DNA from: Selaginella moellendorffii
Lineage: Eukaryota; Plantae; Lycopodiophyta
Length of the DNA stretch: 64,000 bases
Reading direction: 5' to 3'
Assembly (NCBI RefSeq): GCF_000143415.4
Contig: NW_003314287.1
Location: 1,257,374 to 1,321,373 of the forward strand
Position numbers and translations under genes: made by a program. Shown piece after piece: positions 31,616-62,449 of this stretch. The notes under the pieces were generated by a model. That model was not told the origin of the DNA. It saw only the letters and a list, made by a program, of their open reading frames with translations, and ran no database searches. Within the stretch, counting starts at the first letter, position 1. Every line of letters starts with the position of its first letter.

Positions 31616-31682
31616 ATGCTTTATTTCTTTGGGGAAGGGAGTTAATAACAAAAATATTGCTTTATTTTTTTTGAAGGTCATA

Positions 31683-31823
31683 CTTTATAACAAACACAAG
31701 TATAACTTATGCAAAACATTAGTATGTTGTTGTTAAAGGATGTAAAATTCCACTTTTAGTGAGTTTGCTTGTTGGTACAATTCAAGGGATTGCATCTCTA
31801 GAACTTGCAACAAGAGTAAAAAT

Positions 31824-31871
<48 letters not shown>

Positions 31872-31882
31872 AGAAAGTATAT
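31683..31882 (-). pseudogene. Cys-rich peptide family pseudogene 1
   Basis: MIFTLVASSRDAIP*IVPTSKLTKSGILHPL matches the precursor; an (AT)n tract interrupts the signal-peptide codons; conserved upstream TTGTTT.TTTCACTTAATTCATT. Confidence 0.8.
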
Positions 31883-35600: not shown

Positions 35601-35749
35601 TCTATAGATATCCTTTGCTTGGAGCTAAATTATCAAATAAATGTTAATAATTTAGTTGTGGATTATTAAATAACATAATCATGCTTTAGTTTCTAAGGAA
35701 GGTAGACAAAAATATAAGTAATGTAGTTATACTTTATTTCTTTTAAGAT

Positions 35750-35979
35750 TAAATAAAAAATAGCACAATATAGATTATAATCACATATTATGGATGTTGG
35801 TTATTATGGATCAGGATAATAATATGTAAGACATGAGCAAGATGTGATGAAAGGATGTGAAATTTCATCTTTAAAGAGCTTTCTTGTTGGTACAATTTCT
35901 AGGTTTGGACATCTAGAACTTGTAATTAGAGTAACAGTCATTCAAAAAAAAAATATATTATACTATTAGAAAATATCAT
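35750..35979 (-). pseudogene. Cys-rich peptide family pseudogene 2
   Basis: MIFSNSII..(frameshift)..TLITSSRCPNLEIVPTRKLFKDEISHPFITSCSCLTYYYPDP** followed by ICDYN. Confidence 0.8.
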
Positions 35980-36295
35980 TATTAGTGGAATGAATTAAGT
36001 GAAACAAAAATTGAACTATAGAGATTATAAGATTTTCACATTGCTAAATACTGGTCACAAAAGCTCATTTTTTTTAATATAAATTAATAGAAAATTTAAA
36101 GTAGTTGATAATTTTACAAATTTGGTAGCTTTAGCATTTCAATAAAATTTTAACACTTAGGGGGTTAAATAGGGTATGTAGAAGGCTATGGAACATTTAT
36201 ATATGCCAATGTATGCTTGTTTGGTTTTTGATACCATTACTAAAAAATAGACAAAACAAATAGGGATAATGATCTAGCTCTCACAATTACATAGG

Positions 36296-40270: not shown

Positions 40271-42589
40271 TAGGTGAATAATTCCTTAATTTGTTTTTTA
40301 CTAAGGCTAGCTTTATCTCTCTTACATTTTAAAAAATAAGGCACAAAAACTACAATAAGTAACATGAGGAGAATAGTAATAGACTTGCAAAATATTAAAG
40401 TTAAAATCATCAATGATTTAGATGTAAAATTAACTTTAGAATATAAAGGATATGTGTTTTTTGATAAATACTTCCACCTTACCATATCAATTAACATAGA
40501 TGCAACTAAAAGTGGAAATTTAGTGATTGGGATAAAATCCCAATCCTATTAGCAATTCTGGAAGCTACTAAAGAACAAGGTAAATTAGTAGTAACAAGAG
40601 ATTGAGTTGTATGCCTAAGCATAATACCAAGTATTATGTAAATTCCAATTGCAAGTATAAGGCTCAATGTAAAAACTTAATATAAACTTAGTGTTAATAT
40701 AAGGAGGAATAAAATTAAACAAAAAGGGTTCTTATGGAATCTTTTTTATTTCTCAGTGGATGAATAAATGCTAGGAAACACTAGGGTAGCTCCAAAAGCA
40801 AAAGAAAAAAATTCCAAATGATTCCAAGGATTCCACCTAAGGATTCCAAAGAAAAAATTCCAAATGATTCCAAAAAATGATTCCAAGGATTCAACCTAAT
40901 TTTAGTATTTTTGGTATATGATGAAATCATGTTTCTTTTGCACCTAAAAATCTTTAAACAATGTTATCCATTGTTTTTGAAAGGCTATTGCAACTTTTGC
41001 CATTTGGAAGCTTGTGGAATCTTGTAAAAACCACCGAGGGAGAGCATTAAAAAACCAATATCAAGTCCTACTTTAGTAGTGTTCAAGTAGTTCTTGTTTC
41101 TTTCTTCTTCTTTTTCTTCTTTGTTTTTGATTGAAGCTTGTAGTGATGGCATTTGGGCTTAGCCAAGTTATTGCAATGCTTCTACTCTTCCTTCACTAAT
41201 TCTTTGCTTTTTAAAATAAACTCAACCTTTATTTAATTGAAGCTTGCAATGATGGCATTTGCACCTGGCCGAGTTATTGCAATGCTTCTACTCTTCTTTC
41301 ATTGGTTCTTTACTCTTTAAAATATACTTAGCTTTTGTGTGATTGAAACTTACAGTGATAGCATTTGCGCTTAAGTGAGTTATTGTTGTGTTTTTGCTCT
41401 TCCTTCATTGGTTTTTTGCTCTTTAAAATATACTCTACCTTTGTCTCATCTTTTTACGCTTGTTTCCATGCTTGTTCCTTTGTTTTGTTTTCTCTGGTGA
41501 ATTCTATTTTTTTCATTACACCCCTTGTATGGCTTAATATAGCTTCTTCCTCTTTTTCTAAAACCCTACTCAATTTTTTAGAAAAGGAGCATTGGTGTAA
41601 AAGGAGATTTGGGAGGTGTAGATTGCATATGTGCAGATCATAAGCTCTAGGTGCTCCTACAAATCCAGCAGCACACTCATTTATTAGCAAATCTAGTAGC
41701 ACACTCATCGCTTAGCAAGGGTGTCAATGTGAAGCACCCCTCCTCTAGGCCAAGGATAGTATTTCAAAGATATAGAAAATGGTACAATAATGACATTGAA
41801 ATGCTTAAATTTAATAAATTTGGCACTTTAATAAATTGTTTGATTTTATTGATAGGTAGATTGTTTTCTTTATATAGTGAAGGTTTTAATATCTTATTTT
41901 AATATCAGGATTAGCAATATTATCATCACTATATACTATTGCTCGTAGTGGACAGGTGGGGATATTAATGTGCATAATAGTTATAGAACTTTATTGACAT
42001 ACCACCCTCCTCATATTCAAATGCATGGAATCTAATAATATAGATTCCTACATGATATTAGCAAAGTAGGCTTTCCCACATTAGGGACATAATGTCATCA
42101 CTACTTTGTTTTATCTAGAGACATTTGGAACTTTGGTGGGATTTTTTATATCTATTGGTGACATGTCAGAAATTGCAATGCTTCACCTTGTACACCTCCA
42201 TTTCAACATTTTCTAAGGTTGTGATATTGCTATTTTGATAGCATTCTTTATTATATTGCCAATGACGTGGCAGCATTTAACAATCATGTTATTATTTTCT
42301 TTCCTTTGAAACCTGTCACTAATTATTATTATGGGATATGTGCTATCTATAGATACATTATATTTATATTTGCCCTCTAATATATTTTTAATCTTTGGCT
42401 TGGCCACAACCTTTTTTACAATATCTCTAGTAAGAGTTTTCTCCCTTTAATATGCTTATCTAAAGGTTTCAATGTTATTAACATAGTTCCTTTTCACCAT
42501 TTATATATATTTCTATTAATAAAAAATATACATACAGTATTCTATAAAAGTTGGATAGAAATTATTAAGACAATTCCTTTTATATTAAT

Positions 42590-43150: not shown

Positions 43151-44319
43151 TTATATTGCACCTCCTTGGCAAAAATGTAAATGGAAAAAATATAAACTTT
43201 CATGATTGTCTTTTCTTAAGGAACAAAGAGAAAGGTAGAAAAGTACTTGCAAAAGTTTAGGATGATAAACACTACCACTCACTATTACCCTTATTCAAAT
43301 GTTGATAAAATTAAAGTTAGATATGTTTCTTGAGCTTAAAACCATTAATGTTCATTTACAATTCTACACTAAAAGATTATAGTGAAAAAAAAACACTTTC
43401 ATTTACAAATATTAACCCTATATTTAATACTTTGTCAATATCTTTGATGGTAATTAAATTAAATTTTTATTAAAGCTTGATATACATTTCCACCAGGGTG
43501 TTGCCCAAAGTTAAAATAAAAGTAAGTACTTGCTCCTTGAAAATTCAATTTCTCAAAATTATAAGAATTGTTTACTTTCTATTGAGCTTTTCACTCAAGT
43601 AAGAATGATAGGAATCAAATATTGAAGCTTTTATAACAGCATCAATAACTTGCTTTGGCTTAGGAGAGATGGTGAATTAAGAGTGTATAAATCGACAAGA
43701 ATACTTGTCATGAACATCTATAATTCATCTTGATACACTTAAACAAGATTTTCAAATTTACAAAAAACTTATCAATTTCTCTATACCAAGTATGAGTGGA
43801 TGTACTTTTTATAGACAATCTAATTTCCTAGATAAGTTTTATACTTAGTCATATAAAAAACTTTGTGAATAAGGTTGCTCAAAAGGTATGTGCAAATTTA
43901 ATTCTTGCCTTCCAAATTCTCGTAGGATTTATTAATGCACTATTAACTTGTGTAATGATGAGAGCTAGATTGTTGTCCTTGATTGGTTTAAAAGTTTTGT
44001 TATAATGCCAAGGCATAGCATCAAAAACAAAATGGGCATCCATAATAATTTTGCACTTGGCATATAAATTGTCGCGCATGTGACTTCGGGTATCGAAAGT
44101 TACCTGTCGACCAGTCCTTACGGACACTCTTACCTTACTGCCACGATGGCAGAAGGTCGGTATTGCTGGACCCTTTATCAGCCCCTCTTGTTCAAGTGTT
44201 AGTAAACTGGACTTTGCATCTGTACTTGGCCAGATGAGCATAAGGACGGAATTCCTAAGTGTCTATTCAGCCAAGCATACTTGGCCTGGCTTTTTAGGTC
44301 TCTTTTGCTCTGTCTTGCA

Positions 44320-44419
44320 NNNNNNNNNNNNNNNNNNNNNNNNNNNNNNNNNNNNNNNNNNNNNNNNNNNNNNNNNNNNNNNNNNNNNNNNNNNNNNNNN
44401 NNNNNNNNNNNNNNNNNNN
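44320..44419. other. Assembly gap (100 N)
   Basis: Run of N. Confidence 1.
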
Positions 44420-44730
44420 ACTTGGGTCTAAGCCCAAGTTCCATTCCATGCTAGCTGGTGGAGTACCCATATCCTCACGTTAGGCCACCAGTATGCCGAA
44501 ATAGCGCCAGACTCTGTTTGGCTCCGTTTTGCATGCTGGTCCTGGCATTGGGATGCTGGTTGCTTCAAGACTATTCCAAGTCGCTCCGGGCTCCTGTCCT
44601 TTCGCTCCTTGGGCTATATGCTCGGGAGTTGCTCCATGGTCCGGTTCCATCACTCCTTGGTGTCACGCTTGGGAGTTTGGCACTGTTCCTTCGTTCAGTG
44701 GCCCAAGGCCCTAAACCTCGGGTTCCTATA

Positions 44731-44860
44731 GACACGTGGCACGGACACGTGGTATGTGACACATGGCATCTGTCACGTGGCACAAAGAGGGTTTAGGTTC
44801 CGCTTCGTGGTGTTATCCTATGGTAAATCACCATAGGATAAAGGGTCAAAACCACGTGCG
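44731..44860 (+). promoter_or_regulatory. LTR-borne cluster of four CACGTG G-box/ABRE motifs plus a perfect 12-bp hairpin (44813-44841); repeated in every unit
   Basis: GACACGTGGC, GACACGTGG, TCACGTGGC, CCACGTG; TTATCCTATGGT-AAATC-ACCATAGGATAA. Confidence 0.6.
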
Positions 44861-45124
44861 CTACATAAATCCAAAAGTACCTTGAGTATGTATTTTTATT
44901 TTCTTCTACAGAATATTACTCTTGTGTTTTGTACACTCATAACCTTCCAAGTGTTAAATTTATATTCAAAGGCATAAAGTTACAAAATTCATAATGTAAA
45001 ACTATTTGTAGATTTCTACAAGAAATAGTGAGTTTTTGTAGCTAATATTTAGCAATGTGAAAATTTTATAATCTTTATAATATAATTCAGCTTGTTTGTT
45101 TCACTTAACTCATTTTAGGAAGAA

Positions 45125-45349
45125 ATGGTGTTTTCTAAAAATATGATATGTGTTTTTTTGATGATTTTTACTTTAGTTACAAGTTTTAGAGATGCAAACT
45201 TAGGAATTGTACCAGCAAGTAAGCTCTCTAAAGGTGGAATTTTACATCCTTTAGCAGCATCTTGCTCATGTTCTACATATTATTGTGTCAATCCATACAT
45301 AATATGTGATTGTAATCCAGGTTGTAGTTGTTTATGTTACTCTTCATAA
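45125..45349 (+). CDS. Small secreted 8-Cys peptide precursor (74 aa), array copy 1
   Basis: Hydrophobic signal peptide, ~22-aa pro-region, C-terminal SCSCSTYYCVNPYIICDCNPGCSCLCYSS; Cys spacing conserved in the diverged paralog at 60215. Confidence 0.85.
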   Translation: MVFSKNMICVFLMIFTLVTSFRDANLGIVPASKLSKGGILHPLAASCSCSTYYCVNPYIICDCNPGCSCLCYSS

Positions 45350-46337
45350 AAATAAAGCATGATTATGTTACTTCCTTACAAAAATAAAGTATGATTATAA
45401 ATCTATGACTAAATTATTTACAATTCTTAAATTACAAGATATGGTTTTCTATACATAGTCATATAAAGTTTTTGAAAATATGCTTTAGAGGAATTTGAGT
45501 TCATTTAAAAATCTAATAAAGAGGTAAATGTTTTCAAATGTATAGTAGGGATAGTGGGTAGGTTGGGCATGGCCGACCAACCTGAGGCATAGTCTAGCTC
45601 CCGCTTGCGTGCCTGTCCTTGTTCTGCGTCCAGCTTGGGTCTAAGCCCAAGTTCCATTCCATGCTAGCTGGTGGAGTACCCATATCCTCACGTTAGGCCA
45701 CCAGTATGCCGAAATAGCGCCAGACTCTGTTTGGCTCCGTTTTGCATGCTGGTCCTGGCATTGGGATGCTGGTTGCTTCAAGACTATTCCAAGTCGCTCC
45801 GGGCTCCTGTCCTTTCGCTCCTTGGGCTATATGCTCGGGAGTTGCTCCATGGTCCGGTTCCATCACTCCTTGGTGTCACGCTTGGGAGTTTGGCACTGTT
45901 CCTTCGTTCAGTGGCCCAAGGCCCTAAACCTCGGGTTCCTATAGACACGTGGCACGGACACGTGGTATGTGACACATGGCATCTGTCACGTGGCACAAAG
46001 AGGGTTTAGGTTCCGCTTCGTGGTGTTATCCTATGGTAAATCACCATAGGATAAAGGGTCAAAACCACGTGCGCTACATAAATCCAAAAGTACCTTGAGT
46101 ATGTATTTTTATTTTCTTCTACAGAATATTACTCTTGTGTTTTGTACACTCATAACCTTCCAAGTGTTAAATTTATATTCAAAGGCATAAAGTTACAAAA
46201 TTCATAATGTAAAACTATTTGTAGATTTCTACAAGAAATAGTGAGTTTTTGTAGCTAATATTTAGCAATGTGAAAATTTTATAATCTTTATAATATAATT
46301 CAGCTTGTTTGTTTCACTTAACTCATTTTAGGAAGAA

Positions 46338-46562
46338 ATGGTGTTTTCTAAAAATATGATATGTGTTTTTTTGATGATTTTTACTTTAGTTACAAGTTTT
46401 AGAGATGCAAACTTAGGAATTGTACCAGCAAGTAAGCTCTCTAAAGGTGGAATTTTACATCCTTTAGCAGCATCTTGCTCATGTTCTACATATTATTGTG
46501 TCAATCCATACATAATATGTGATTGTAATCCAGGTTGTAGTTGTTTATGTTACTCTTCATAA
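46338..46562 (+). CDS. Small secreted 8-Cys peptide precursor, array copy 2
   Basis: Identical protein to copy 1. Confidence 0.82.
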   Translation: MVFSKNMICVFLMIFTLVTSFRDANLGIVPASKLSKGGILHPLAASCSCSTYYCVNPYIICDCNPGCSCLCYSS

Positions 46563-47550
46563 AAATAAAGCATGATTATGTTACTTCCTTACAAAAATAA
46601 AGTATGATTATAAATCTATGACTAAATTATTTACAATTCTTAAATTACAAGATATGGTTTTCTATACATAGTCATATAAAGTTTTTGAAAATATGCTTTA
46701 GAGGAATTTGAGTTCATTTAAAAATCTAATAAAGAGGTAAATGTTTTCAAATGTATAGTAGGGATAGTGGGTAGGTTGGGCATGGCCGACCAACTTGAGG
46801 CATAGTCTAGCTCCCGCTTGCGTGCCTGTCCTTGTTCTGCGTCCAGCTTGGGTCTAAGCCCAAGTTCCATTCCATGCTAGCTGGTGGAGTACCCATATCC
46901 TCACGTTAGGCCACCAGTATGCCGAAATAGCGCCAGACTCTGTTTGGCTCCGTTTTGCATGCTGGTCCTGGCATTGGGATGCTGGTTGCTTCAAGACTAT
47001 TCCAAGTCGCTCCGGGCTCCTGTCCTTTCGCTCCTTGGGCTATATGCTCGGGAGTTGCTCCATGGTCCGGTTCCATCACTCCTTGGTGTCACGCTTGGGA
47101 GTTTGGCACTGTTCCTTCGTTCAGTGGCCCAAGGCCCTGAACCTCGGGTTCCTATAGACACGTGGCACGGACACGTGGTATGTGACACATGGCATCTGTC
47201 ACGTGGCACAAAGAGGGTTTAGGTTCCGCTTCGTGGTGTTATCCTATGGTAAATCACCATAGGATAAAGGGTCAAAACCACGTGCGCTACATAAATCCAA
47301 AAGTACCTTGAGTATGTATTTTTATTTTCTTCTACAGAATATTACTCTTGTGTTTTGTACACTCATAACCTTCCAAGTGTTAAATTTATATTCAAAGGCA
47401 TAAAGTTACAAAATTCATAATGTAAAACTATTTGTAGATTTCTACAAGAAATAGTGAGTTTTTGTAGCTAATATTTAGCAATGTGAAAATTTTATAATCT
47501 TTATAATATAATTCAGCTTGTTTGTTTCACTTAACTCATTTTAGGAAGAA

Positions 47551-47775
47551 ATGGTGTTTTCTAAAAATATGATATGTGTTTTTTTGATGATTTTTACTTT
47601 AGTTACAAGTTTTAGAGATGCAAACTTAGGAATTGTACCAGCAAGTAAGCTCTCTAAAGGTGGAATTTTACATCCTTTAGCAGCATCTTGCTCATGTTCT
47701 ACATATTATTGTGTCAATCCATACATAATATGTGATTGTAATCCAGGTTGTAGTTGTTTATGTTACTCTTCATAA
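47551..47775 (+). CDS. Small secreted 8-Cys peptide precursor, array copy 3
   Basis: Identical protein to copy 1. Confidence 0.82.
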   Translation: MVFSKNMICVFLMIFTLVTSFRDANLGIVPASKLSKGGILHPLAASCSCSTYYCVNPYIICDCNPGCSCLCYSS

Positions 47776-48763
47776 AAATAAAGCATGATTATGTTACTTC
47801 CTTACAAAAATAAAGTATGATTATAAATCTATGACTAAATTATTTACAATTCTTAAATTACAAGATATGGTTTTCTATACATAGTCATATAAAGTTTTTG
47901 AAAATATGCTTTAGAGGAATTTGAGTTCATTTAAAAATCTAATAAAGAGGTAAATGTTTTCAAATGTATAGTAGGGATAGTGGGTAGGTTGGGCATGGCC
48001 GACCAACTTGAGGCATAGTCTAGCTCCCGCTTGCGTGCCTGTCCTTGTTCTGCGTCCAGCTTGGGTCTAAGCCCAAGTTCCATTCCATGCTAGCTGGTGG
48101 AGTACCCATATCCTCACGTTAGGCCACCGGTATGCCAAAATAGCGCCAGACTCTGTTTGGCTCCGTTTTGCATGCTGGTCCTGGCATTGGGATGCTGGTT
48201 GCTTCAGGACTATTCCAAGTCGCTCCGGGCTCCTGTCCTTTCGCTCCTTGGGCTATATGCTCGGGAGTTGCTCCATGGTCCGGTTCCATCACTCCTTGGT
48301 GTCACGCTTGGGAGTTTGGCACTGTTCCTTCGTTCAGTGGCCCAAGGCCCTAAACCTCGGGTTCCTATAGACACGTGGCACGGACACGTGGTATGTGACA
48401 CATGGCATCTGTCACGTGGCACAAAGAGGGTTTAGGTTCCGCTTCGTGGTGTTATCCTATGGTAAATCACCATAGGATAAAGGGTCAAAACCACGTGCGC
48501 TACATAAATCCAAAAGTACCTTGAGTATGTATTTTTATTTTCTTCTACAGAATATTACTCTTGTGTTTTGTACACTCATAACCTTCCAAGTGTTAAATTT
48601 ATATTCAAAGGCATAAAGTTACAAAATTCATAATGTAAAACTATTTGTAGATTTCTACAAGAAATAGTGAGTTTTTGTAGCTAATATTTAGCAATGTGAA
48701 AATTTTATAATCTTTATAATATAATTCAGCTTGTTTGTTTCACTTAACTCATTTTAGGAAGAA

Positions 48764-48988
48764 ATGGTGTTTTCTAAAAATATGATATGTGTTTTTTTGA
48801 TGATTTTTACTTTAGTTACAAGTTTTAGAGATGCAAACTTAGGAATTGTACCAGCAAGTAAGCTCTCTAAAGGTGGAATTTTACATCCTTTAGCAGCATC
48901 TTGCTCATGTTCTACATATTATTGTGTCAATCCATACATAATATGTGATTGTAATCCAGGTTGTAGTTGTTTATGTTACTCTTCATAA
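48764..48988 (+). CDS. Small secreted 8-Cys peptide precursor, array copy 4
   Basis: Identical protein to copy 1. Confidence 0.82.
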   Translation: MVFSKNMICVFLMIFTLVTSFRDANLGIVPASKLSKGGILHPLAASCSCSTYYCVNPYIICDCNPGCSCLCYSS

Positions 48989-49152
48989 AAATAAAGCATG
49001 ATTATGTTACTTCCTTACAAAAATAAAGTATGATTATAAATCTATGACTAAATTATTTACAATTCTTAAATTACAAGATATGGTTTTCTATACATAGTTA
49101 TATAAATTTTTTGAAAATATGCTTTAGAGGAATTTGAGTTCATTTAAAAATC

Positions 49153-51120
49153 TAATAAAGTGGTAAATGTTTTATCATGTATATTTTCCCAGGCAGAGCA
49201 AAAGAAGGAACTTAGACGAAATAGAGTTACGCTTAAATTTAGGCATCCAAAGAAGAAAGACTAAACCTAAGCAAAAAATAGTTAGAAATGGTTATAAAAT
49301 AATGTAGTATATAAGTAACACTTAAACGTACTGAAAAACAACTCCCACTCACTATTGTATACATATGCATTGAATTAACTATCTTTGGGGTTTGATACTG
49401 AGTTATATTCTATTCTTTTTTATTTTCTTCTCTTCTTCTTCTATGTTTTTGTCTTTGTTTGTTTGTCACTGTTTTGCAGGCAGGAGTGAGAACGTGAGTA
49501 CAAGTAGAAAAAGCCTTACCTACTTTTGGCAACTATGGTAGGATAAACTGTCATTCTTTGGTTTAAAAAATAATTGGGAGAAAATTGTTTATGAATTCCA
49601 AATATGCACAACACTAAGAATAATAAATAGATCTTTTCAGTGATTGTAAAGGCCCTAAGCCTAAACAACACTAAACAAAGGAACTCTTCTTGCAATTAAA
49701 ATGGTTTAATGCCCAAACAACGTAGGAAAGATAGTTTCTCAACTGTCACTAAAGCCATAGAGTATGGGATGAGTTTGAAATTGAAGTTCGGCATACATTG
49801 CCAAAAAACTCAAATTTAAATTGTTTTGTTAATAATTTCTTGAAAAAAATCTAAAAGAATAAGGAATAGAGTTTGTTTGATGTGGAAAACATAATCAACT
49901 ACTCTAGAATTCTTTCTTTCTGAGCAAGTTTTTATTTGGATTTTTAAAGGATACATTTTTTAGCAACATGTCACAATTTTTCTAGGCATATAGAAGTAGA
50001 AAAATTGAGCACCTGTAACTCTTGTCTTCGACTCCAACTTGAGGAAGAGTTTGGGCCTAAAGCTATACCACCATAGTAAAATATTGAGATTGAGATTAAA
50101 TTTATAAATTAAATAAGGAGAAAAGAAAGAAGTAGGGTAGCTAAACCAACTAAATCTAAACAATTAAGTTTTGAGAATGATAAAATTTTGAAACTACCTT
50201 CGATTGCACAAATTTCAATGTTGAAGCTTTAAAATCACCCAACTTCAAAGGTTTACAAGACTATTAGGTTCTAGAAGATTGAGTTTATGATATGGAAAAT
50301 TATTATAACAGATATTGATGATCATATAAAAGTTGCATATACATAATTTTTTCTCATCAATCATGCTAAGACTTACTGGTGTTAGGTGTGATATAAAAGC
50401 TATACACACCGTAATAACTAAATATTTAGCTAAGTTGTTAGGATTGAGAGTTAAGAAAATATACCTACATATTTTTAGTTTATTGAAAATAGACAAGTTG
50501 CAAAGAAATTTGTAAATAATGTACCAATAAAAATAATCAAATAGAAAGACTTAGTAATGTTGAAGATACTAAATTTTTAGATGATGTTTGGTATCTTCAA
50601 GAAATATATCCAGGGATACATAATGTTAGATAGAGTTGCATTATATTAAAGTCAAATTTCTAATTGCAAAAGTGCTTCTTGAAGGATTGAGATACTAGAT
50701 TTCTATCTATAAGAGTATCTCAAAGAACATCTAAGAATAAATGTTGAACCTTTTGGGTTTAAGTGATGGAAGAGAAAGTGATAGTGATTAAGTTAAAATA
50801 GGTAATAGTGTTGATTTAGTATCAAGGGAAATCATTGAATTATTAAGGAATTATATTATCTTCTCAACAAATTACTATTAAAGTAAACTTAATGTAAAAT
50901 TTACCATCATACCTCACCTCTTAATTGTGAGGTTGATCATCAAATTGAGATTTCTTTGGGTTCTAAGCCGCCAATAAAGGTTCTATATCATTTGAACATC
51001 AAGAAAAAATTTGAACTTAAGAACCAACTCATAAAAATTCTTGACAAATATCATAGTAAGTCACCTTATAGGGATGGTACTATAAGGATATATATTGATT
51101 ACAAGCTCTTAGACTAAAAG
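49153..51120 (+). mobile_element. Old Ty3/gypsy element (family B): 5' LTR ~49153-49553 and decayed gag-pol up to the RT start
   Basis: LTR is homologous (inverted) to 38069-38550; 50920-51110 translates to VDHQIEISLGSKPPIK..YHL....ELKNQL..IL...SKSPY..DGTIR.YIDY (gypsy RT N-terminus). Confidence 0.7.
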
Positions 51121-51259
51121 TATAGTGAAAGTTGTACTAAACTTCATTTGACAATGTAGGAATCAAATATGAGGAGCTAGTGCTTATAAAGGATTTGAGA
51201 GTGTACCAAACTCTCATTCCATAGTGCAATAGGTTTAAAATTTAGGCTTTAAATTCAAG

Positions 51260-51470
51260 TGTATAATTTACAATAGTTATTAGTGTGGGCTTTGGTGGTT
51301 TGAAGGAGTTTATATTTTTAGGAAGACCTAATATATTTAGTTTCATCATTTTTTACTCTACATGCTTTAAGAGACACTTGCAAAAAGGAGACCACTCTAG
51401 AAGATAAGAGCTTAATAAGTATGATTGCTTATTTAAATAATGGAGAGGTCTATTTGAATAGCTCTTTTTC
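51260..51470 (+). pseudogene. Decayed aspartyl aminopeptidase fragment
   Basis: GGAGTTTAT.TTTT.AGGAAG.C...CTCTAC.TGCTTTAAGAGACACTTGCAAA...GACCA.TCT.GAAGA matches ~30160-30310. Confidence 0.75.
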
Positions 51471-51493
51471 TTGAAAAAACTTTATAAGCCTCT

Positions 51494-52180
51494 TGTAGTG
51501 CACATGGTTTTCACCCATTATCCTATGGTAATTTACTATAGGATAACTATGGAGCAAAATATAACACTTAAACATGTGTGTAAAGGGCAATAGAGTGAAA
51601 TTAAGTTTTAAAGCCTTAGATTATTAAATTAAGGGAAAGAGCTAAACATTTGAGTTTATAACCAAGGAGTGAATGAATTTGAGCATAAAGTAACTTTCAA
51701 GCATATAGCCAAAAACGAAGAAGTAAGAGCATGAAATGATATTAAAACAATCCTAGAGTATCTAGCATCCCAATGCTAAGACCAAAATGCAAAATGGAGC
51801 CAAATGAAATTTGACATTATTTCAGTATACCAATGGCTTAACATAAGAATATAGATACTTCATTAGGTAGTATGGCATAAATTTTAGGGTTAAATCTAAA
51901 CCAAATGTAAAAAAAGACAAATATGTTGAATTTAAACTTCTAGGAGGTCATCCAATCCAATATTATTTAAATTAAGGACACTTAACCCAAATATCCCAAA
52001 ACCCTTAACTAATTAAAAAAAAAGCACTTTTATTCATAAGCTCTTTCCTTTTATATTTAAACCCTTATGGACCATTATTCCCTTATACATAACATATGGT
52101 TACTTACACATACAGTTAAACTATATTTTAAATTGGACCTTCCCACTATCCCTACTATATATTTGGAACCCCATAGATGC
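51494..52180 (-). mobile_element. Degenerate inverted copy of the family-A LTR 3' part found in the tandem array
   Basis: TGTAGTGCACATGGTTTT.ACCC.TTATCCTATGG... is the reverse complement of the array LTR end; CCCACTATCCCTACTATA matches the array TATA-like segment. Confidence 0.75.
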
Positions 52181-53194
52181 CTTTATATGAAAGCATGCTT
52201 TTGGCTTTCATCCTAGTCTTAAGAATTAGTCTTTAGAGTAATCATAAAAATTTACTTAATATAAAATGGTGTTAGATTGTGAATTTGGACATAAGAATAA
52301 CACTATCATGTTCAAAACAATATCTATATTCTATAGATATGCTTAACTAGTAATTTAGACACTTTTCCATAAATAGCTTATAGGAATTAACACATGTAGC
52401 ATGATTGTAAGAGTGTATTGGTGGACATGGTAAGCTATTATATAATGAATATTAACTCAACATTAGTAAGTGCAAGTAGTCTTTTATCCTGGACCAAGTA
52501 TGCTCAACAAGAAACATATACAAATGCTTACTTTATACTTATTTAGCATAAATATATATATGATAATCAATTTCTCAACTAATTTGGGTGGAAACTAATA
52601 AAGGGAACAGATAGTACCAATCCAAAAAGGCTCATTAATAGATAAATTTTGATATCTACAATCATATTTAAAATACCTCTACTCAAAAGAACCAAATCAA
52701 TAGAAACACATTGGAATATAATTGTCTTGTAAAAGTGACCACAAGGGGATTGTAGAATGAATAATTCAAAAGCCTTTCCTGGCTGGCAAGAAAGGTAATT
52801 AGAGCTATGCATAAATCTGATCCTCCTCTAAGGAAACAAAATAAGAACAGCAAAATAATATCATCATTTCTCACTGTTGGCTATGTCAAGAAAGTGGGAA
52901 GGAAACTCTCACCAGTGGGAGAATATCTTTGGGATCTTTTAGAAATGGCTGCACTAGAATCACTCTCTAATGTACATTCTTAATGTGCAAAAACCCATGG
53001 AATCGTTTGCCTTTCACACATGCAAAGCCACTATGGAGGAAAAATATTTACACAGAATTACATTAGAGATGGCTTCATTTTATTGGCTCCACCTCTACTT
53101 TTAATGTTACCTTCCCCACTGACTATGACTGGAGAATCAGTTTTATGCTCAGCTAAGCAAACTTAGAGTTAGGCTATGAGATGACGAGTAGATA

Positions 53195-53720
53195 TTCTTC
53201 TATAATCGTTTCTTTCTGCCAGTCTCTGCTGATATGGCCCAACTACTCCCAAAAGAACGAAGAAAACCATCAGCAAGGCTTGGTGATCAAACACAACGCA
53301 AACTAACAATACGCTACAAACTCCGTCACTGCATTTCTCTTCAAAGAAGTTGCTCGACTTGCAAATATACAAACTCAGGTAACCTTGAGCTTCGTAGAGC
53401 CATTTTTTTCAGTCATTGTTTTGCTACTGCGCAATGTCATGGGGTGTGGCTTAACAGTTAGTCCCATACTAGCGTCAGGACGGTAGATTGTGGACTGCCT
53501 CAGCTTTCAATGCACAAATATGGTATGTACCACTCATTTTCGCTTCTCATCGTTGGCTTTTACTAGCATTCGCAAAATGTGTGGAACACAAGATATCGAC
53601 ACCAATGGTCTATAAAATGCCCATTAATCAACAGCTTTCCACGGATACAGAGTCCCCGGGTGTACAAAATTTCGGCCATAGTAGCAGTGACGAAAAGAAT
53701 GATAGCAGCAAATTCACAGC
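53195..53720 (+). pseudogene. Aspartyl aminopeptidase 3' duplicate (pseudogene), including its 3' UTR
   Basis: Colinear with ~30510-31145 (GTCTCTGCTGATATGGCC...ACGCTACAAACTCCGTCACTGC...GAACACAAGATATCGACAC...GATAGCAGCAAATTCACAGCC) with deletions. Confidence 0.88.
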
Positions 53721-53724
53721 CATT

Positions 53725-56700
53725 TTACGTGAAGATGGTGATCACGTCTCTCCTGTAGCCACGGACCATTAGCAGCCTGGGAATGCCATCGACGAGGAGG
53801 TCCATGTACTCCATGTAGCAATATGAGGGATGCTTGGGAGGTGGCGGTGGCAAGCTGACCAGCACCACGGCCGCCATTCTCGAGTATCTCATGATGATTG
53901 AGTTGAGCTTGAGGCTGGTGTAGAGGAACTTGTTAACTTGCTGCTCGTTGTAAGAGTGCTGGACCTCGTCCTCGATCGACGCAGCTTTCTTCTTGAGCTC
54001 GGCAGACCTGTGAGCAATCCTCTTCCTGGCCTTGGAGAAGGCCTCCATTGCGTCCTCCCGTCCAGTATCCACGCCACGGTCCTCCTGGTGAGCCTCCCAC
54101 GACTTCATCGTCACCACAATCACCTCGGCTTGCATGCGCAGGTCATACAAGAACTTCTTCACGTCGGCCTTGAGCTCCTCCGCCTCGGTGTCCTCCTCCG
54201 AGATGCAAAAGACTTGAATCTTACAGCTCTCGAAGCTGTCCTTTGCTCGGAGGAGCTGGGAGAGGAGCAGCATGAGGCCACCGTCGCGGACGATCCAGTA
54301 GAGGTCGATGGTTCCATACTGCTTCTGGTATTCGCCCGGCCACTCGTCCAGCCCCTTGACGATCACCACGGCCTTGTTTGCGATGGAGCAGTCGTTGATA
54401 ATGCTTACGAAAACATCGGAGACGCGGCCATGTTGTTCGTCCCTCCAGATCTCAGGATATCTCATGCAGACGATGTTTGGCTTGAGGTTGCCAAGTCCCA
54501 TAGTCTGTACAATACCCCGGAACCCCTCGCAGACATCCTTCGCAATGATCACCTCGGCCACCCCTTCGCAGTTTTTGTAGTCGATGTAAGTTCCAAGTAA
54601 TCGACACGCCTGACGTGCCTCGTCTACCTTATCTATATACTCTCCCTCCGAAATGGAAACGAATATGGACATACCGCGGCCCTTCTTCTTCATGCAGTTG
54701 GCAAAGTCGGCGAGTTTGGGATGGCATGGAACGTCTTGTGGCAAAATCCCCCAAGGCTTGCAAAATATAAGTGGAATGGGATACCAGTTTTTCGGGTGGA
54801 CGTTGTTTGCTGCAGAAGTAACAATAATTTAAAGAGTTTGAAGATAGGAAAAAGCTTACCTCCTAAGGAACGAAGACTTCTTAAAGCAAGCTGAAAGTAA
54901 GCACTTTTAAAACCATCACCCCAGTCTCCTGCTTTGCCTTTCAAGCTAACGTAATAATATATGAGACTTGCCAACGCGAGTGATACAGTTGTGAAAATCC
55001 AGGATATTAAAAACATTATAACTGTAATCCAGATAAACACTGTTACAGGTAACTTCAGTAATTGGTAAAAGTATGTACCTATGCACAATAGAGCACCCAG
55101 GAGCGAAAAGCTCCAGTGATGAAATTTCCACCGAGGACGCCAGCTTGGAGCATCAAGTAAGTCGAGCAAAAGACAGGAAAGATTAACTCCCGCATAGCAC
55201 AAGAGAAAGAACATGGTAATAACGGGAGAGATGAGGTCGAGATCACCAATGATGACGCAGCTTGAACATATGAACATGGTGAAAAGAGTTGCCAAATGAG
55301 GCTCGACCCCGTCTGGTGCCTTGAAATATTTCAAAACTGGGAGTATGTCGTCATTTGCAATAGCAGCTAGCAGCCTTGGCGCACCGGTTAAACTTTGAAG
55401 AGCTGCGCCAAGTGTCGAAAGGATAATGCCAACTTGAACGACTGCGGGAACAGGCCAAGCTAATGTCGCGGTCAGCAATCTAGATAACCAAAAAAAAAAA
55501 AAAGAATTTGTTACAAACATACAAATAGAGTTTTCTCAATGCATACCGATTTGTTAAGAGTTCTTCACGGTTTGCCACAGAGCCAAACATGATAGCTGAA
55601 ATTAAATAAAGACATGTCGTGGAGGCAATGGCTAGCAAAGTTCCCACCGGTATAGAACGCTGTGTATCTCTCAGAGATGCAGAGCGATTGGAGCCAGCCA
55701 TAATACCAGTAACTGCCGGGAAGAAAAGCCCCAGCAGGTCCCTGAAAAACAAAGAAGTCACGCAAAAGATAACGGCGTCCGACAAACAGAAATTAAAAGC
55801 ATGCGATATAGAATTTGACGAAATAGAAAGAAAACGATTCATGCATTCCCTAGCAAACCAGATGAAAAACGCAACGACACATACTCAAAATTCCAGTATA
55901 TGATACCATCTGGCGCAGGAATTCCAGCTCTGTTGGTACGCTGGTACTCGGGACCCCAGTTAGCATGGAGTGTTCTCCATCTGAGGCCCGTCACTCCCGC
56001 TGGACATCACAGATATTAGAACGGCTCAATAAACATTTGATTGCTTACATGGATCACCACGTCGAGGAGCAGCAAAGATACCAATAAAGATGAGGAAAAC
56101 GGATAATAAAACTGGAATAAGAAAAGCCGGGGCCACTCTGTTGATGATCTTCACACCTCCAAAGACGATAAGACATAAGATAATTGTCACAATTACTCCA
56201 TACACTTGAAGGTCATGCAAACTGGGACTTTTTAATATCTCAGGACTCGAGCCTGCTGGAGCTGGTGCTAGTTGTGTCACGCTTTCTGCACATGAAAAAT
56301 CAAGCAAATTAAAAACACGCAAAAGAATAGAAAGGGAACTCTTGAGATTTACTAGCCTTGAAATATGCCGGCCCCAGGAAGAGCATCCAGAAAAGTTTCT
56401 ACTGCACCTAAAATATACCTAAGAAGTGTCCAGTTATGATCGAACAATCAAGGACAGGGGAACACTTACAGTGATCCAGCAACCGCATTTCCAAGGAAAA
56501 AGCAAAGCCCAATACTAATACCGACTTCCGGACCAAGAGCTCGACCAATCAGATAATACGGTCCGCCACCCTATAAACCAGTGCTTAACCAAAAGAAAAA
56601 CTGTCGCAACGCAAAATTTTGAACCTTCATCGCGCCATTGGTGGCTATGGCGCTCAGCGAGATCCCAGTCAAGAATGTGCATAAGCAGCACAAAGAGACG

Positions 56701-57410
56701 AGCACCAAACTCTGTCCAATTCCAGCAAGGCCTACAATCCTGGATATCGTCACCGAATAGCATCACCAAATCTTAATACAACTCGGAGAAAACTTACCAC
56801 GAAAAACGGATGTAGAAAATAATTCCTAGAATGTTTTGAAGACATGGTACAAAGACTCCCATGAGTGTTCCAAGCTTTGCACCGCGAGGCTGAAAATTAA
56901 TTTTTTTCAAGACAAGAACATGAGCGAACAGTGGATTTTCGACGTACCCGAGGACGGCCAAGCGTGATAGCAATCTCTTCTCCAGCCCTGGGACTAAAAG
57001 CTTGTGGTGGCTGCTGGCCTCCCATACTGAGGTAAGACACTTGAGTTCTATAGGACATAGAAAAATTAGAAGCCTTGCACATACCTTTTGAGCCCGACCA
57101 CATCGACGAGCGAATCAATCTCGAAAAGCTCCAGCTTTGTTTCTCTCTCGGTTTGATCAAAAATCTCGTCAGTCGGAGACACCGGCCCATCATCTTGATC
57201 AAAGCGAGCATTTTGACTGGATCTGCCAGTATTGACCGACCTGGCGGATGCGGATTGCGTGAATTCCAGAAAGTTTGCGCACAAGACTTACTTAATCCCC
57301 GCTGGTACTTCCAGATCCACGACATCGAGCTCGCCATTCGCTCGCGGCGATTCCCGCCGCCCGGCCGCATTGGCGTCGTCGGCGTCGCCGCCGCCCTTCT
57401 CCACTCCCAT
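53725..57410 (-). CDS. CCC1: Cation-chloride cotransporter (SLC12 family), multi-exon
   Basis: [123 protein letters not shown]; ATG at 57410. Confidence 0.96.
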
Positions 57411-57935
57411 CGCTCTGATCTAAACCCTCATTCGATCCCGGCCTGGAATGCGCCAATTTGGATCGAGATTACGCGTGAGCAGCTACCTGGATCGCCAGTG
57501 ACAGCAGCTGCGCCGCAAGATCCGACCGCAACAGGGACGCGACCGCGACACGGCAAGGTGCTCGTTCCTAGGGTTTAACAAACATCCCAGAGAAACATCC
57601 TAGGGCACGAACGGCACTGTACGGCCGGATTGAATTTCAAAACCCGCGCGCCTAAAATGTTCTAAGGGCAGAGATCGCAAATGATTCTATTGCGAGGCCG
57701 AATTGGAGGCGTTAATCGCGTCATTCAAGCACGGCCTCTTGATCGTCGGAGATGAAGAAGTATAGCTTTTGGACACAATCGGGAAGAAATCGCGCTAGGG
57801 CAAGAGTCGAGGAGCGATCATCCAGATGATCACAAGCACGAACGGCGCTGTACGGCGTGACCCTTTCTCTTTGCAGAAACGCGCGCGCCTTTAAAACCAT
57901 AAACGTGTGGGCATTGCTCTTCGCTAGGCTAAGAT

Positions 57936-59283
57936 ATGCGGTCTTCGCAGGGTAAAAGAGTGGCTCCTTTCATCTTGCTCGCCGCGATTTGCCTGGTTTT
58001 CCATGGAGTGGATCGCCCATCGTCCCGGTTGCGATCAACGAGACTGGCCTTCTTCGTCCACAATCAGCAAAGGAATCCTCGCGCACACAAGCTTGCGGTA
58101 TGCGCTGTTTCAGAAAAAAAAACATTGGTGGAATTCTCGTGTTCTTTCAGGATCCCCGGGTCGCAATTTGTCTTGTAGGCGGAGCCAGAGCCTTCGAGAT
58201 CACTGGACCAAGCATAGTGGACCAAATCCTCCACGTCTACGGAAACAATTCGGATGTGTTCCTCCACGCGCCGCTGGACGAGAACACTTACAAGCTCTTC
58301 CTGCTGGGCAGGGGCGCTAGATCGAACAGAAATTCTTCGTCCTCGCGGTTGGCAGCAGCGCGGATCTTCGATCAAACACCCATACCCGAGCTTGATTTTC
58401 GCAAGCAAGTCCTCACATCCGATGGGATTCAAGTAAGCTCTCTTTGCATCGATCTAGGTACTCTGTTTTTAGCTTTGGCCACCTTCTTTCCAAACTTGAC
58501 ATCTCGCAGGGATTACTGCAATATTTCAATCTCGTCGAGGGCTGCTGGGATCTCATCACGAAACACGAACGTCGTCATGGTTTCCAGTACGATTGGATCG
58601 TAAGAACAAGGCTAGATGGCTACTGGAGTGCCCCTATGCCGCCCATCTCCACCTTCGATGGCGCCCACTACACTATCCCATACGGCTCCCAATTCGGCGG
58701 CCTCAACGACAGGTTAGGCATCGGCACTCGCAACTCCAGCCGCATCGCTCTCCACCGCCTCCAATGCCTCGATCGCCTCCACGCAAACGGATTCCAGCGC
58801 CTAAATTCCGAGAGAGCATTCAAGGCGCAGCTCCAAATCACGCACACCAGCGTCCAGCTCAAGAAATTCCCCTTTTGCGTGGTGAGCGCGAAGAAGTACG
58901 ATTGGCCGCCCAGGGAATGGGGCGTGCCTGTGATGACCATGGCGAGCAAAGGACCTCTAAATGGAGCGAAGTGTCGTCCATGCCGGGCGAAGATCAGAGG
59001 AGAGGAAGCTCACGCCATCGCCGAGGCACTAAACAGGGGGTGGAGCTGGAGTGGACCTAACGAAGGGGTGGAGCTTTGCGATGCCACGGGGGACTGGGAT
59101 GCTGACTGGGAGGCTGTCTATGACAACGTGGTTGGTCAGTGCAGTCAATTGGAGAGGTTGCGGGTGTCTCGCCTGGGGACGCTAGACGAGTGTGTGGAGA
59201 GATTGACCGAGTTTGAGAGAATGTGGGGTGAATGGGATGCTCCTTCTCCTGTTAGTATTTGCGAAAGGAAGTTTATAATTTGA
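57936..59283 (+). CDS. Conserved plant protein of unknown function with N-terminal membrane anchor (DUF7796-like; possibly glycosyltransferase-like), 3 exons
   Basis: RVAICLVGGARAFE.TGPSI, FLHAPLD, GIQGLLQYFNLVEGC, YDWIVRTRLDGYW, PYGSQFGGLNDRLGIG, SKGPLNGAKCRPC; GT-AG introns at ~58098-58150 and ~58432-58509. Domain name is from recall. Confidence 0.8.
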
Positions 59284-59376
59284 TTAGAATGATATCTTAT
59301 TTACAAACTTCTTTTTCTGGTGGAAGTGACTAAGATTAAAAAAAAAAAAGTATGATTAATGCTTTATTTCATAACT

Positions 59377-59574
59377 TTAGGATTTCGTTACAAGTAACAA
59401 AAACAAGCAAATGGCATCATCACAATTGCATATAAGACATGGAACAAGACAATAATATGGAGGGCATGTAGCCACTGTTATTAAAGGATGTAAAACTCCA
59501 TCCTTACAAAGCTTGCTTGCTAGAAAAATATTCAAGTTTCCATCTCTAGAATTTGTAACAAGAGTAAAAATCAT
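59377..59574 (-). pseudogene. Cys-rich peptide family pseudogene 3
   Basis: MIFTLVTNSRDGNLNIFLASKLCKDGVLHPLITVATCPPYYCLVPCLICNCDDAIC then a frameshift; original start and first Cys lost. Confidence 0.75.
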
Positions 59575-60214
59575 CAGAAAAAAACATTAAAATATATAGT
59601 TTTTAAATGGCTCTGTGATCCCACTATGCTAATATTAGTATATGGCATCTTAGCTGTACACAGCTCTAATTATTTTGTAAAATGTTTATTAAAATAGTAA
59701 ATTAAACTTATAATTTTTTTCATATATCATATGTAAATTTTTACAACAAAAAATACTGCTGAGAATTTGGAAAAAGGCCCTTTCCAACAGCATACAAATA
59801 TAGAACAAAGTATTTAGAGGATTTTGAAAAAAATGTTTTTATTCCATCAACTTATTAGTTCTACCTTAAATTTTTTGACTAAATGTGCAAGAGATTTATT
59901 ATACAAGGGTGTTCTCTTACACTCATATTACCATGTACTAAGTATGGAAAAAAAACATTTATTTATTTGATATAAAATGAATTATGATTTGTCTCTATTT
60001 TTTTGGTAAAGGACAAAAAAGATTAACATTGCTAAATACAAAGGCTTTTGATGCTTTTAAAGAAATAGCTATTTTATATAAGAAAAGGACATAAAAAAAT
60101 CAAGATAAAGTCTATAGACAATTGTATTTACCAATGCTAGCCTTTTGTTTCTTTCCACTATATTACTATATAAAAGCTTGTTTGTTTGAAATTAATTCAT
60201 TCAAGTCTTAAGAA

Positions 60215-60436
60215 ATGGTGTTTTCTACTCACATTATCTGTTTTTTCTTGATGATTTTTACTGTTGTTGCAAGTTCTAGAGATGCAACCCCAAATATTAT
60301 TCCAGCACACAAGCTCCTTGAGGGTGAAGTTTTATATCCTTCAAGAGTGCGTTGCCACTGCTTTTCATATTATTGTCCTGATCCATATAGTGTTTGCAAT
60401 TGTGATGGGATTTGTGCTTGCTTTTGTGAATTTTAA
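60215..60436 (+). CDS. Small secreted 8-Cys peptide precursor (73 aa), diverged intact paralog
   Basis: MVFSTHIICFFLMIFTVVASSRDA...YPSRVRCHCFSYYCPDPYSVCNCDGICACFCEF; TATAAAA at ~60168, same 5' leader as array copies, downstream AATAAA. Confidence 0.85.
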   Translation: MVFSTHIICFFLMIFTVVASSRDATPNIIPAHKLLEGEVLYPSRVRCHCFSYYCPDPYSVCNCDGICACFCEF

Positions 60437-62449
60437 CAAATATTTAAAGAAATAAAGGATTAATCACAAAATAATACTAATTTTTCATTTACAAAATCTT
60501 TCATTCCTGCATGATTTGTCAATGCATACTAGGGCATCCTGTTCACCCTACATTCTCTCAAACTTTGCCAATCCAGACACTTACAACCTTTCGAGTTGAC
60601 TAGCCATGTCCCATGCTGACTGCCTCCTACTCCCCATCTCCAGCCCAAAGCTTGTATCCTCTAATCTTTGCTGGGCATGGATTCTCTACTCAAGTTGAAG
60701 ATAAACCCTTGTGAATGCAACTTGTGTCCTCAACCAAGAGGGACTGGTGCATTAAATGTTGGATCTTAGCAGTTTAGAGAGTAGCAAAAAGGTGCTCAAT
60801 TAGGCAAAGGCTTGATGCTGTTGGAGCCAAAAATTTGGTAAGCCTTGAGTTTGAGGCTAAGGGTTATAGCATATGAGACATACCATTCACAGTTTCCAGG
60901 ATATAAAATTAAATTGTCTTCAACTTCACTAAACTACTATGTATCCAACTCCACAACTGAAATAAGGTCCTCTATTCGTTTTTCCTTCTCCTAGGGTGTC
61001 ATCTCTTTCCATTGTGATTGTACAATAGTGAAATAGTGTGTTTTCTCATATTAAAGTATAAGTAACAAACATAGATACATTTGCAAAACTGGTATAATAA
61101 TGGGGTCTTTCAGTGTTTTTTTGGCACCCAATTGGAGACATATAACTAATGGTAATTACAATAGTAATTTGTCATTGCAATTGTTTCCCCTTGGAGAAAT
61201 TTCCTGCCAAAATCATTTATTTCTTCAAATGTATATATAGTGGTAAGTTTGTTGTAAAAAAGCAATTTTGATTATTTTACAGTAAATAACTTTATGAAAT
61301 GGACTTATGAAGTTGCTGTTCTCTCCATATAATCAACTTTAAGATTTTTGTGTATTTAGGGTTCTTTGATTCTCCTAAAAAATGTATGTATCAAGTTTTT
61401 GCAATAGTACATTTGATCTTCATTGCACTCAGAGCATGTGCTCTATTTGAAGAGCTACTAGAGGATCCACAGTGTTATCACCAACAACAGTGTGAATGCC
61501 TTTGCAAAATGCTAGGGTATAGTGAAGAGTTACATGGCATTCAATTAAATGCTATAACATGGCACCATGTCTAGGAATTCTTGGGGATGATCCAAAATTG
61601 AGTTAAACTCATGAATTGAGCTCAACTCAACTCAAGTCAATGCTACTTAATGTAATCAACTATAAGTTTACAAAGAAATTTTATTGAATTTGAAATTTAT
61701 AAATTTAATTGTTAATGGTTAGAAATTTATATTATTTTGAAACTATTAATGAAGAGAACTTCTAATTTTTAATACGAGCTATACAATAGAATATTGATTA
61801 AGTAGTTTCTAGAATTAGAATTTTATCCAAACCTATATAATTGTTAGTTTCTATATTCACAATTTTCTAGTTAAAAGAAGCCTTTTTTGTCCCAAATAAA
61901 AATAGAAATATTAAAGTTTGCCATGAACTTGAAAATTTCTATCTTAACATCTTGATATGTTGACATTTTGACATTTTGACATTTCAACAATTGACCACCA
62001 CACATCAAGCGAAAAATATATAGATAATTCAAAATATTTCATCATTCATTCTCTAGTGTTTTCCAAAGATGGGAAGCAAAGAAAACCAAAAATCTGCAAG
62101 TAATTCTAGCATAAAGAAATGTGAAAATATTGCTTCACTACCATGATTTTCATATTACACTCTTAGTCCTTATTACCCATCCAAGAATATAAAGTCTATT
62201 ATCACTATTAATAAAAATACTCATATTACTTCTGAAACAATAATCTAGAGTCAAATATTATACAGAAAAGTAAGTTGTTTGTTTATTTTCTATTCTCCTT
62301 GTATGAGCATAATATATTATTATAGTGAATCTCTATAAAGAGTATAAATGTATAATATATTCATCTTGTATCATATGATGTGGATGACTGTTGCAATTGT
62401 CAAGTTACAACGTAGCCTCTGAAAAGGGCAATGCTTAAAACCATTTTAA

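Follow-up and report, generated by a model that had tools for sequence, protein, structure and literature searches.

Secretion-type peptide genes with a conserved eight-cysteine framework, in tandem and broken copies, in the lycophyte Selaginella moellendorffii

The DNA analysed here, called the window throughout, is a stretch of 64,000 nucleotides of Selaginella moellendorffii (NCBI RefSeq assembly GCF_000143415.4, contig NW_003314287.1, positions 1,257,374 to 1,321,373 of the forward strand). It holds a family of small genes predicted to encode secreted peptides with eight cysteines in the spacing CxCx4Cx6CxCx3CxCxC. Copies were located with a list of open reading frames (ORFs), with tblastn using one of the proteins (A) as query, and with a regular expression (regex) for the cysteine pattern. 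A sequence-only reading of this DNA had counted eight members, four identical, one diverged but intact and three pseudogenes; the eight were all found where it had placed them, and the division was borne out in every part (Table 1). The identical genes, called A-type, are four 74-codon ORFs on the plus strand that do not differ at the nucleotide level; the diverged intact gene is called B-type. An nhmmer search of the window, with a nucleotide profile based on every copy, detected no further relic. That the ORFs had arisen by chance in AT-rich DNA was considered and ruled out, given that a shuffled 222-nt sequence of the same AT-rich composition stays open in 0.36% of trials, and that all eight cysteines and an open frame are found in two lineages 30% apart.

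Table 1. Positions of the peptide genes and associated features in the window and on scaffold GL377599.1 (L001, L002 and L003 are the stretches of the GL377599.1 region that match the window)
Feature	Sequence	Position	Strand	Details
A-type peptide gene, copy 1	window	45125-45349	+	74 aa: signal-peptide-like N-terminus, linker, 8-Cys domain
A-type peptide gene, copy 2	window	46338-46562	+	ORF list, tblastn, regex; nucleotide-identical to other A copies
A-type peptide gene, copy 3	window	47551-47775	+	ORF list, tblastn, regex; nucleotide-identical to other A copies
A-type peptide gene, copy 4	window	48764-48988	+	in the most diverged array unit
B-type peptide gene, intact	window	60215-60436	+	73 aa, 52% identical to A, 8/8 Cys in register
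Broken copy, head-to-head with B	window	about 59347-59697	-	start codon lost; stop at 59589-59587; Cys 1 lost; 1-base insertion before Cys 6
Broken copy	window	about 35719-36070	-	stops at 35944-35942 and 35806-35801; 12-nt insertion; 4/8 Cys left
Broken copy	window	about 31614-31964	-	TA microsatellite in signal-peptide part; stops at 31784-31782 and 31721-31719; Cys domain (3' half) unrecognisable
Upstream block, A copy 1	window	45046-45101	+	12-nt motif 45046-45057; TATA-like run 45076-45086; leader motif 45090-45101
Upstream elements, B gene	window		+	12-nt motif 60125-60136; TATA 60167-60174; leader 60176-60187
AAATAAAGCAT (contains AATAAA)	window	45350-45360	+	just past the stop; in 5/5 aligned window copies; B copy at 60450-60457
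Tandem array	window	44421-49183	+	3.9 units of 1,213 bp; one unit against the window by blastn, 99.2-99.9% identity
Assembly gap	window	44321-44420		100 N, directly before the array; sequence read
Retrotransposon long terminal repeat, split by gap	window	44066-44865	+	matches L001:868-1121 and 1480-2024; 3' end ...TACA at 44865 abuts first gene segment
B-type gene, intact	GL377599.1	L001:12280-12501		74 aa
B-type gene, intact	GL377599.1	L001:14943-15164		74 aa
Neighbouring coding stretches used for codon third-position GC	window	14628-15866, 17386-18339, 21290-22420, 53725-54744, 58444-59283

The cysteine spacing is kept in 4 of the 4 distinct intact proteins, namely A, B and two encoded on scaffold GL377599.1, which is described below. 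In an alignment of the four, 37 columns are invariant; they take in the greater part of the signal peptide, a few residues of the linker, the eight cysteines and the motifs YYC and PY. This agrees with the sequence-only reading, which had described a shared spacing and a YYC/PY core with diverging residues in between, on small secretion-type precursors with a fixed framework. Each precursor would begin with a signal peptide of some 20-21 residues, continue with a linker of about 25 residues in which RDA, I-x-P-A-x-K-L, G and L-x-P are fixed, and end in an acidic, tyrosine-rich domain of 28-29 residues that carries the CxCx4Cx6CxCx3CxCxC pattern. At the N-terminus, Lys5 is followed by a hydrophobic core of 14-15 residues (maximum Kyte-Doolittle value 3.1), and V-x-S stands before the predicted cut. 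By the rule of n, h and c regions, on which this call rests, the segment fits a signal peptide and seems too short for a membrane anchor. The linker, which the sequence-only reading took for a pro-region ending L[HY]P, has no dibasic or other known processing site, and its cleavage would be a guess. Computed masses are 3.1-3.3 kDa for the cysteine domain and 5.7-6.0 kDa for all residues after the signal peptide; the domain has an isoelectric point of 4.0-4.5, a net charge of -1.6 to -2.6 and three invariant tyrosines.

The conservation of this framework was compared with a neutral simulation in which the differences between A and B (64 of 213 aligned nucleotides, 30%) were introduced with the same substitution spectrum. 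All eight cysteines were kept in 0.083% of the trials, the frame remained open with its Met in 5.7%, and all cysteines plus an open frame with Met were obtained in 0.003% (3×10−5). The commonest simulated outcome, 3 to 4 cysteines kept, agrees with the broken copies, which keep 4 to 5 of the 8. When A is compared with each of the three B-type genes, the ratio of nonsynonymous to synonymous substitution rates (dN/dS) comes to 0.46-0.71. Conservation between A and B is much the same at each of the three codon positions (47, 52 and 50 of 71), which means that constraint is concentrated on the cysteines and the signal peptide and is not spread over the protein. We conclude that the open frame, the putative signal peptide and the eight cysteines have been maintained by selection, while almost all residues between the cysteines change at about the neutral rate. 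The earlier proposal of selection on a cysteine scaffold therefore stands, the simulation being statistically clear.

At a shorter time scale, the window B gene differs from its GL377599.1 counterpart by 18 nucleotides and by 15 of 73 amino acids, with a dN/dS of 2.2. Positive selection between the two is not claimed, since in spite of this ratio the divergence of the ORF equals that of its flanks. Change outside the scaffold thus looks near-neutral between B and its counterpart, with no constraint beyond the cysteines visible at that time scale.

Gene signals were aligned over five window copies. Homology among the dispersed copies is confined to a block that runs from about 95 nt before the start codon to about 15 nt beyond the stop; in the five aligned copies it holds the 12-nt motif, a TATA element some 50 nt ahead of the ATG and a leader common to them. 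Intact copies have an A at -3 and a G at +4 around the start codon, and AAATAAAGCAT is likely the poly(A) signal. To judge from these elements, the members would be compact, self-contained single-exon genes of about 330-400 nt, each with its own TATA box and AATAAA signal. A transposon-borne ORF was also considered and rejected, as the dispersed copies share a promoter-to-poly(A) block only; no terminal repeats were noted, no dedicated repeat search having been run.

The A-type genes lie in the tandem array, each unit of which joins the 3' ~545 bp of a GC-rich long terminal repeat (LTR) of ~1.16 kb to an AT-rich gene segment of ~666 bp. Only 1 or 2 bases separate units 1-3; unit 4, still homologous over 1,124 bp, shows about 9 differences in that length. 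The unit with A copy 4 is probably the founder copy. Because the array begins right after the assembly gap, four A copies are a minimum. The LTR part of the array matches L001:1480-2024. One contig of a sequencing run guessed to be RNA (X20) covers, of the array unit, only this LTR part and runs past 44866 into sequence resembling a primer-binding site, which we take to be of the tRNA-iMet type; this continuation makes 44865 the true LTR terminus. At the junction between units, a short stretch of the LTR interior resembles the DNA that follows the gene, and this position suggests that the array arose by microhomology-mediated duplication, then unequal crossing-over. The A gene, with its own upstream motif, TATA, leader and AATAAA block, needs no promoter from the adjoining LTR; read-through from the LTR is possible. 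The LTR family beside the array (44720-44866) looks like a true retrotransposon; on the minus strand, 51451-51916 is a diverged relic of this LTR.

ORFs near the peptide genes encode an AP2 factor, two purine permeases, an SLC12 transporter and a DUF7796 protein. The window permease ORF is 98% identical to SELMODRAFT_417454 and the DUF7796 ORF 97% identical to LOC9656132, both of S. moellendorffii scaffold GL377599.1 (GCA_000143415.2). The public assembly of this species contains both haplotypes, and the window and GL377599.1 are most likely such a pair, the window being the other assembled one. Four copies of the peptide gene were found on GL377599.1, two intact B-type genes and two broken ones. 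The intact pair, which together spans 2,885 bp, comes from a 2,663-bp tandem duplication that also copied a broken peptide gene and a piece of the DUF7796 gene. The region of this duplication is L001:10933-16259, where the copied 3' part of DUF7796 is called as a separate 174-aa gene. The public annotation calls neither of these two B-type genes; the sequence-only reading had expected that annotation would miss such genes, and on GL377599.1 it did.

The GL377599.1 end of the LTR (L001:2024) joins directly to the sequence found at window position 49862 onward. The A array and its 678-bp AT-rich tail (44866-49861; 4,996 bp) are missing at this matching junction, and the 6.7 kb that lie upstream of the LTR end hold no A-type copy; the coverage of the scaffold leaves a break of about 39 kb (about 1,456,113-1,495,115) between L003 and L002. 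The broken copy at 59347-59697 is also present on GL377599.1 and is therefore old. As for copy numbers, four A-type and one B-type gene are seen in the window, against two B-type genes on GL377599.1. Identical recent tandem copies, an old paralogue, old pseudogenes shared with GL377599.1 and these differing copy numbers make visible the turnover that was claimed earlier as birth-and-death evolution.

The comparison of the two sequences also gave some side observations. The permease and the DUF7796 gene lie ~41 kb apart in the window, against ~65 kb on GL377599.1. Between the two sequences the LTR copies are only 85-86% identical, whereas nearby matching DNA is 90-95% identical. Non-coding divergence around B (59233-61300 against L001) is 5-17% per 111-bp bin, with a mean of 7.4%, and that of the adjacent DUF7796 exon 1-3%; the non-coding value seems high for two haplotypes of one plant.

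Plant families of cysteine-rich peptides (CRPs) consist of small genes with one or a few exons, encode a signal peptide and a short cysteine-rich domain with varying loops, and form tandem clusters with pseudogenes. Their genes are often missed by annotation, and lineage-specific CRP families are common in plants. With lengths of 73-74 aa, 8 Cys and a C-terminal pattern conserved in four sequences, the Selaginella family has the size and the cysteine pattern of the operational class of plant secreted CRPs (less than 160 aa, at least 4 Cys, conserved C-terminal pattern). It shares its layout, its conserved cysteines with a signal peptide and its tandem clusters with the defensin-like, thionin, hevein-like, knottin/cyclotide, snakin and NCR peptides, but has a cysteine spacing of its own without a CC pair, an acidic instead of a basic domain, and a linker of ~25 residues. 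By its sequence features it would belong among the plant secreted cysteine-rich peptides, but in none of their known families.

Several searches bear on this placement. Pfam gave the four intact proteins only chance-level rows at E <= 10, Moricin at 0.067 and Metallothio_5 at 0.95. A word-based homology search with the A protein found no relative, nor did an exhaustive phmmer search of 1.84 billion protein representatives find a true one: its three matches were long repetitive proteins in which weak stretches sum up, and were judged spurious on reading. A sequence search of the PDB with the precursor, a profile and the cysteine domain alone had no match at E <= 10, and scans of JGI metagenomes and 185,579 prokaryote genomes with a degenerate pattern found no relative. 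Language-model neighbours in the ESM Atlas were precursors of conotoxins, theraphotoxins and cyclotides, at similarities of 0.75-0.82 that lie in the chance range, so that they are a lead only. Such precursors have a pre-pro-mature layout with a conserved signal peptide and a hypervariable disulfide-rich mature part, like the layout predicted for the Selaginella family. On the side of the differences, the scores are within the range that shuffled sequences often reach, there is no match of sequence, motif or fold, the organism is a plant, and no sign of propeptide cleavage was seen.

Thionins carry the mature peptide right after the signal peptide, with a CC start and an acidic C-terminal propeptide; hevein-like peptides combine a CC pair with a chitin-binding core that is aromatic and rich in Gly; and the nsLTP motif is made of 8 Cys with CC and CXC over 70-90 residues. 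The commonest published cysteine motifs of snakins, LTPs, heveins, thionins, cyclotides and defensins were taken from PMC7168108 as regexes, and no motif of these six antimicrobial-peptide families fits any of the four intact proteins. Plant defensins and defensin-like peptides (Gamma-thionin, PF00304), the published motifs of which include CX10CX5CX3CX9CX6CXCX3C and the broader DEF32 and DEF34 (PMC7168108), were rejected as there was no Pfam match and DEF06, DEF32 and DEF34 failed in strict and loose form. Thionins (PF00321) were set aside because the family has no CC pair, a C-terminal cysteine domain, no Pfam match and no fit to THI018 (CCX11CX9-15CX5CX6-11C). Hevein-like, chitin-binding peptides (PF00187) went the same way, CX3-8CX4CCX5CX6CX3-5CX1-3C failing without a Pfam match. 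For knottins and cyclotides (PF03784), CYC01 and CYC02 (six-Cys CX3CX4-5CX4-6CXCX4-5C) failed, neither Pfam nor fold matched, and the atlas similarity of 0.75-0.77 is in the chance range. Snakin/GASA and nsLTP were excluded by failure of the 12-Cys SNA02 and 8-Cys LTP regexes and by the lack of a Pfam match. Nothing resembling CxCx4Cx6CxCx3CxCxC appears in the 1KP survey of cysteine motifs (PMC7168108) or in the Selaginella thionin reports (PMC8279376). The statement of the earlier reading that the spacing matches none of the CRP patterns it listed is upheld by Pfam profiles and published motifs alike; its wording of a new class was too strong for what is one more orphan plant CRP family at one locus of one species.

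AlphaFold modelled residues 4-24 of the precursor as one helix, within a model that is unusable as a whole (predicted local distance difference test, pLDDT, of 49). For the cysteine domain alone the best model had a pLDDT of 73.5 and the other four 53.6-68.7. In it the chain is predicted to turn briefly at YY, and the two CxC strands to pair with each other as a beta-hairpin. Structure prediction had been put forward as a check on a new four-disulfide class; it returned this middling model, with no fold match above Z 2.2, and did not support such a class.

The reading that we prefer, at a probability of about 0.6, is that of a real, lineage-restricted family of secreted eight-cysteine peptides of S. 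moellendorffii with an extracellular role of the arms-race type. New copies arise by tandem duplication at the locus, and old ones disappear through decay. The product would enter the secretory pathway, the eight cysteines would form four disulfides holding a small knot that contains the beta-hairpin, and the variable surface loops would carry the activity. By analogy with other plant peptides, the role would most likely be extracellular, in defence against microbes or herbivores or in cell-cell recognition. An arms race is proposed because it is in that setting that plant CRP families keep their scaffold fixed while the loops vary, amplify in tandem and show presence/absence variation.

Several observations weigh against this reading. 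The family is known from one locus of one species. The acidic cysteine domain is unlike that of most antimicrobial CRPs, and for this reason a classical cationic antimicrobial peptide is disfavoured. GC content at third codon positions (GC3) is 0.16-0.26 in the peptide genes, as opposed to 0.62-0.82 in five neighbouring coding stretches; a gene in AT-rich DNA that is young or expressed at a low level could look like this. Between window B and its counterpart, the ORF is diverged by 8.1% and the flanks by 7.4% (Fisher p = 0.69). Foldseek found no match in the PDB for the model of the cysteine domain, and the best Z of VIA-align, 2.2 (a scorpion-like peptide and EGF modules), is no evidence of a common fold. 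The four exact proteins are absent from a collection of 15 billion predicted proteins that includes gene calls on assembled public runs. Finally, 0 reads fell on one array unit in three RNA-seq runs, at ~9.2 million sampled reads per run; the runs were matched by species label, the organism in them not being demonstrated, and the target was one array unit and not the B gene, so that these zeros are no valid test of expression.

A more specific form of the preferred reading goes further, and we regard it as doubtful: the domain would be a previously unseen four-disulfide miniprotein fold, acidic and Tyr-rich, in which two CxC hairpin strands are cross-linked to an N-terminal CxC...C segment, made as a haplotype-variable, dosage-amplified extracellular peptide of defence or recognition.

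The same anatomy of signal peptide, linker and C-terminal cysteine domain would be equally expected of a secreted signalling ligand, the eight-cysteine domain of which binds a receptor kinase or another surface receptor in development or reproduction, like EPF, RALF, LURE or SCR/SP11. An acidic, non-cationic domain suits a ligand better than a membrane-active antimicrobial, the 15 of 73 residues that differ between B and its counterpart recall polymorphic recognition peptides, and expression limited to reproductive cells would account for the empty RNA-seq runs. Yet there is no relation of sequence or motif to the known ligand families, and the loops are the most variable part, whereas ligands with a conserved receptor usually keep their loop residues. 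The recent four-fold amplification of identical genes is, moreover, more typical of dosage-driven defence genes. We hold a ligand to be unlikely.

It is also improbable, in our view, that a family once under selection is now decaying or silent, its intact ORFs, and above all those of the A array, which lies embedded in LTR and AT-rich DNA, being unexpressed and functionless. The zero reads on the array unit, the absence of the exact proteins from large predicted-protein collections and the GC3 of 0.16-0.26 would all follow from it. Besides, 3 of the 8 copies in the window and 2 of the 4 on GL377599.1 are already broken, B and its counterpart diverge at the rate of their flanks, and the A array, not being at the matching place of GL377599.1, may be dispensable. 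Against decay, 8 of 8 cysteines are kept in the four independent intact sequences, as are the TATA box, the poly(A) signal and a start codon in good context, and retention of the cysteines and the frame over 30% divergence is very unlikely without selection. Recent duplicates are still intact both in the window and on GL377599.1, and the RNA test is formally invalid, the B gene lying outside its target.

Metallothioneins are cytosolic, have no signal peptide and are usually without aromatic residues, and a metallothionein-like peptide that binds Zn, Cu or Cd by thiolates, with no disulfides, is very improbable here: plant metallothioneins do share high cysteine content (28% in this acidic domain, which has no basic residues in the A type), repeated CxC (three pairs and a CxCxC run, the second half CxCx3CxCxC resembling their cysteine clusters) and small size, but all members of the Selaginella family have a secretion-type N-terminus leading to an oxidising pathway that favours disulfides, and four or five aromatic residues in the domain, among them the three invariant Tyr, while no metallothionein Pfam family is significant, the faint Metallothio_5 row of one member (E = 0.95) being at chance level.

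If the secreted-peptide reading is true, a new cysteine framework under scaffold selection, with copy numbers that differ between the window and GL377599.1, would be a small, concrete addition to plant peptide diversity and a possible compact scaffold for peptide engineering. The locus is a further case of real small genes missed by standard annotation. The new fold, if true, would be a new entry in the short list of disulfide-rich peptide folds of plants. To our knowledge, the plant CRP families characterised to date are nearly all those of seed plants, and the peptide repertoires of lycophytes are poorly known. For the present the family is a moderately interesting catalogue entry and no surprise.

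Apart from the peptide genes, the window is a mosaic of blocks of 28-33% GC and 45-52% GC. A long imperfect tandem repeat of 12 nt (also 46/58/104 nt), TCTCGGACTCCA, occupies 37275-37846 within overlapping ORFs at 37042-37737; these repeat ORFs have no Pfam match, and a similar repeat lies at L002:4022-4359. Another tandem repeat, of 106 bp in three copies, is found in AT-rich DNA at 41126-41442.

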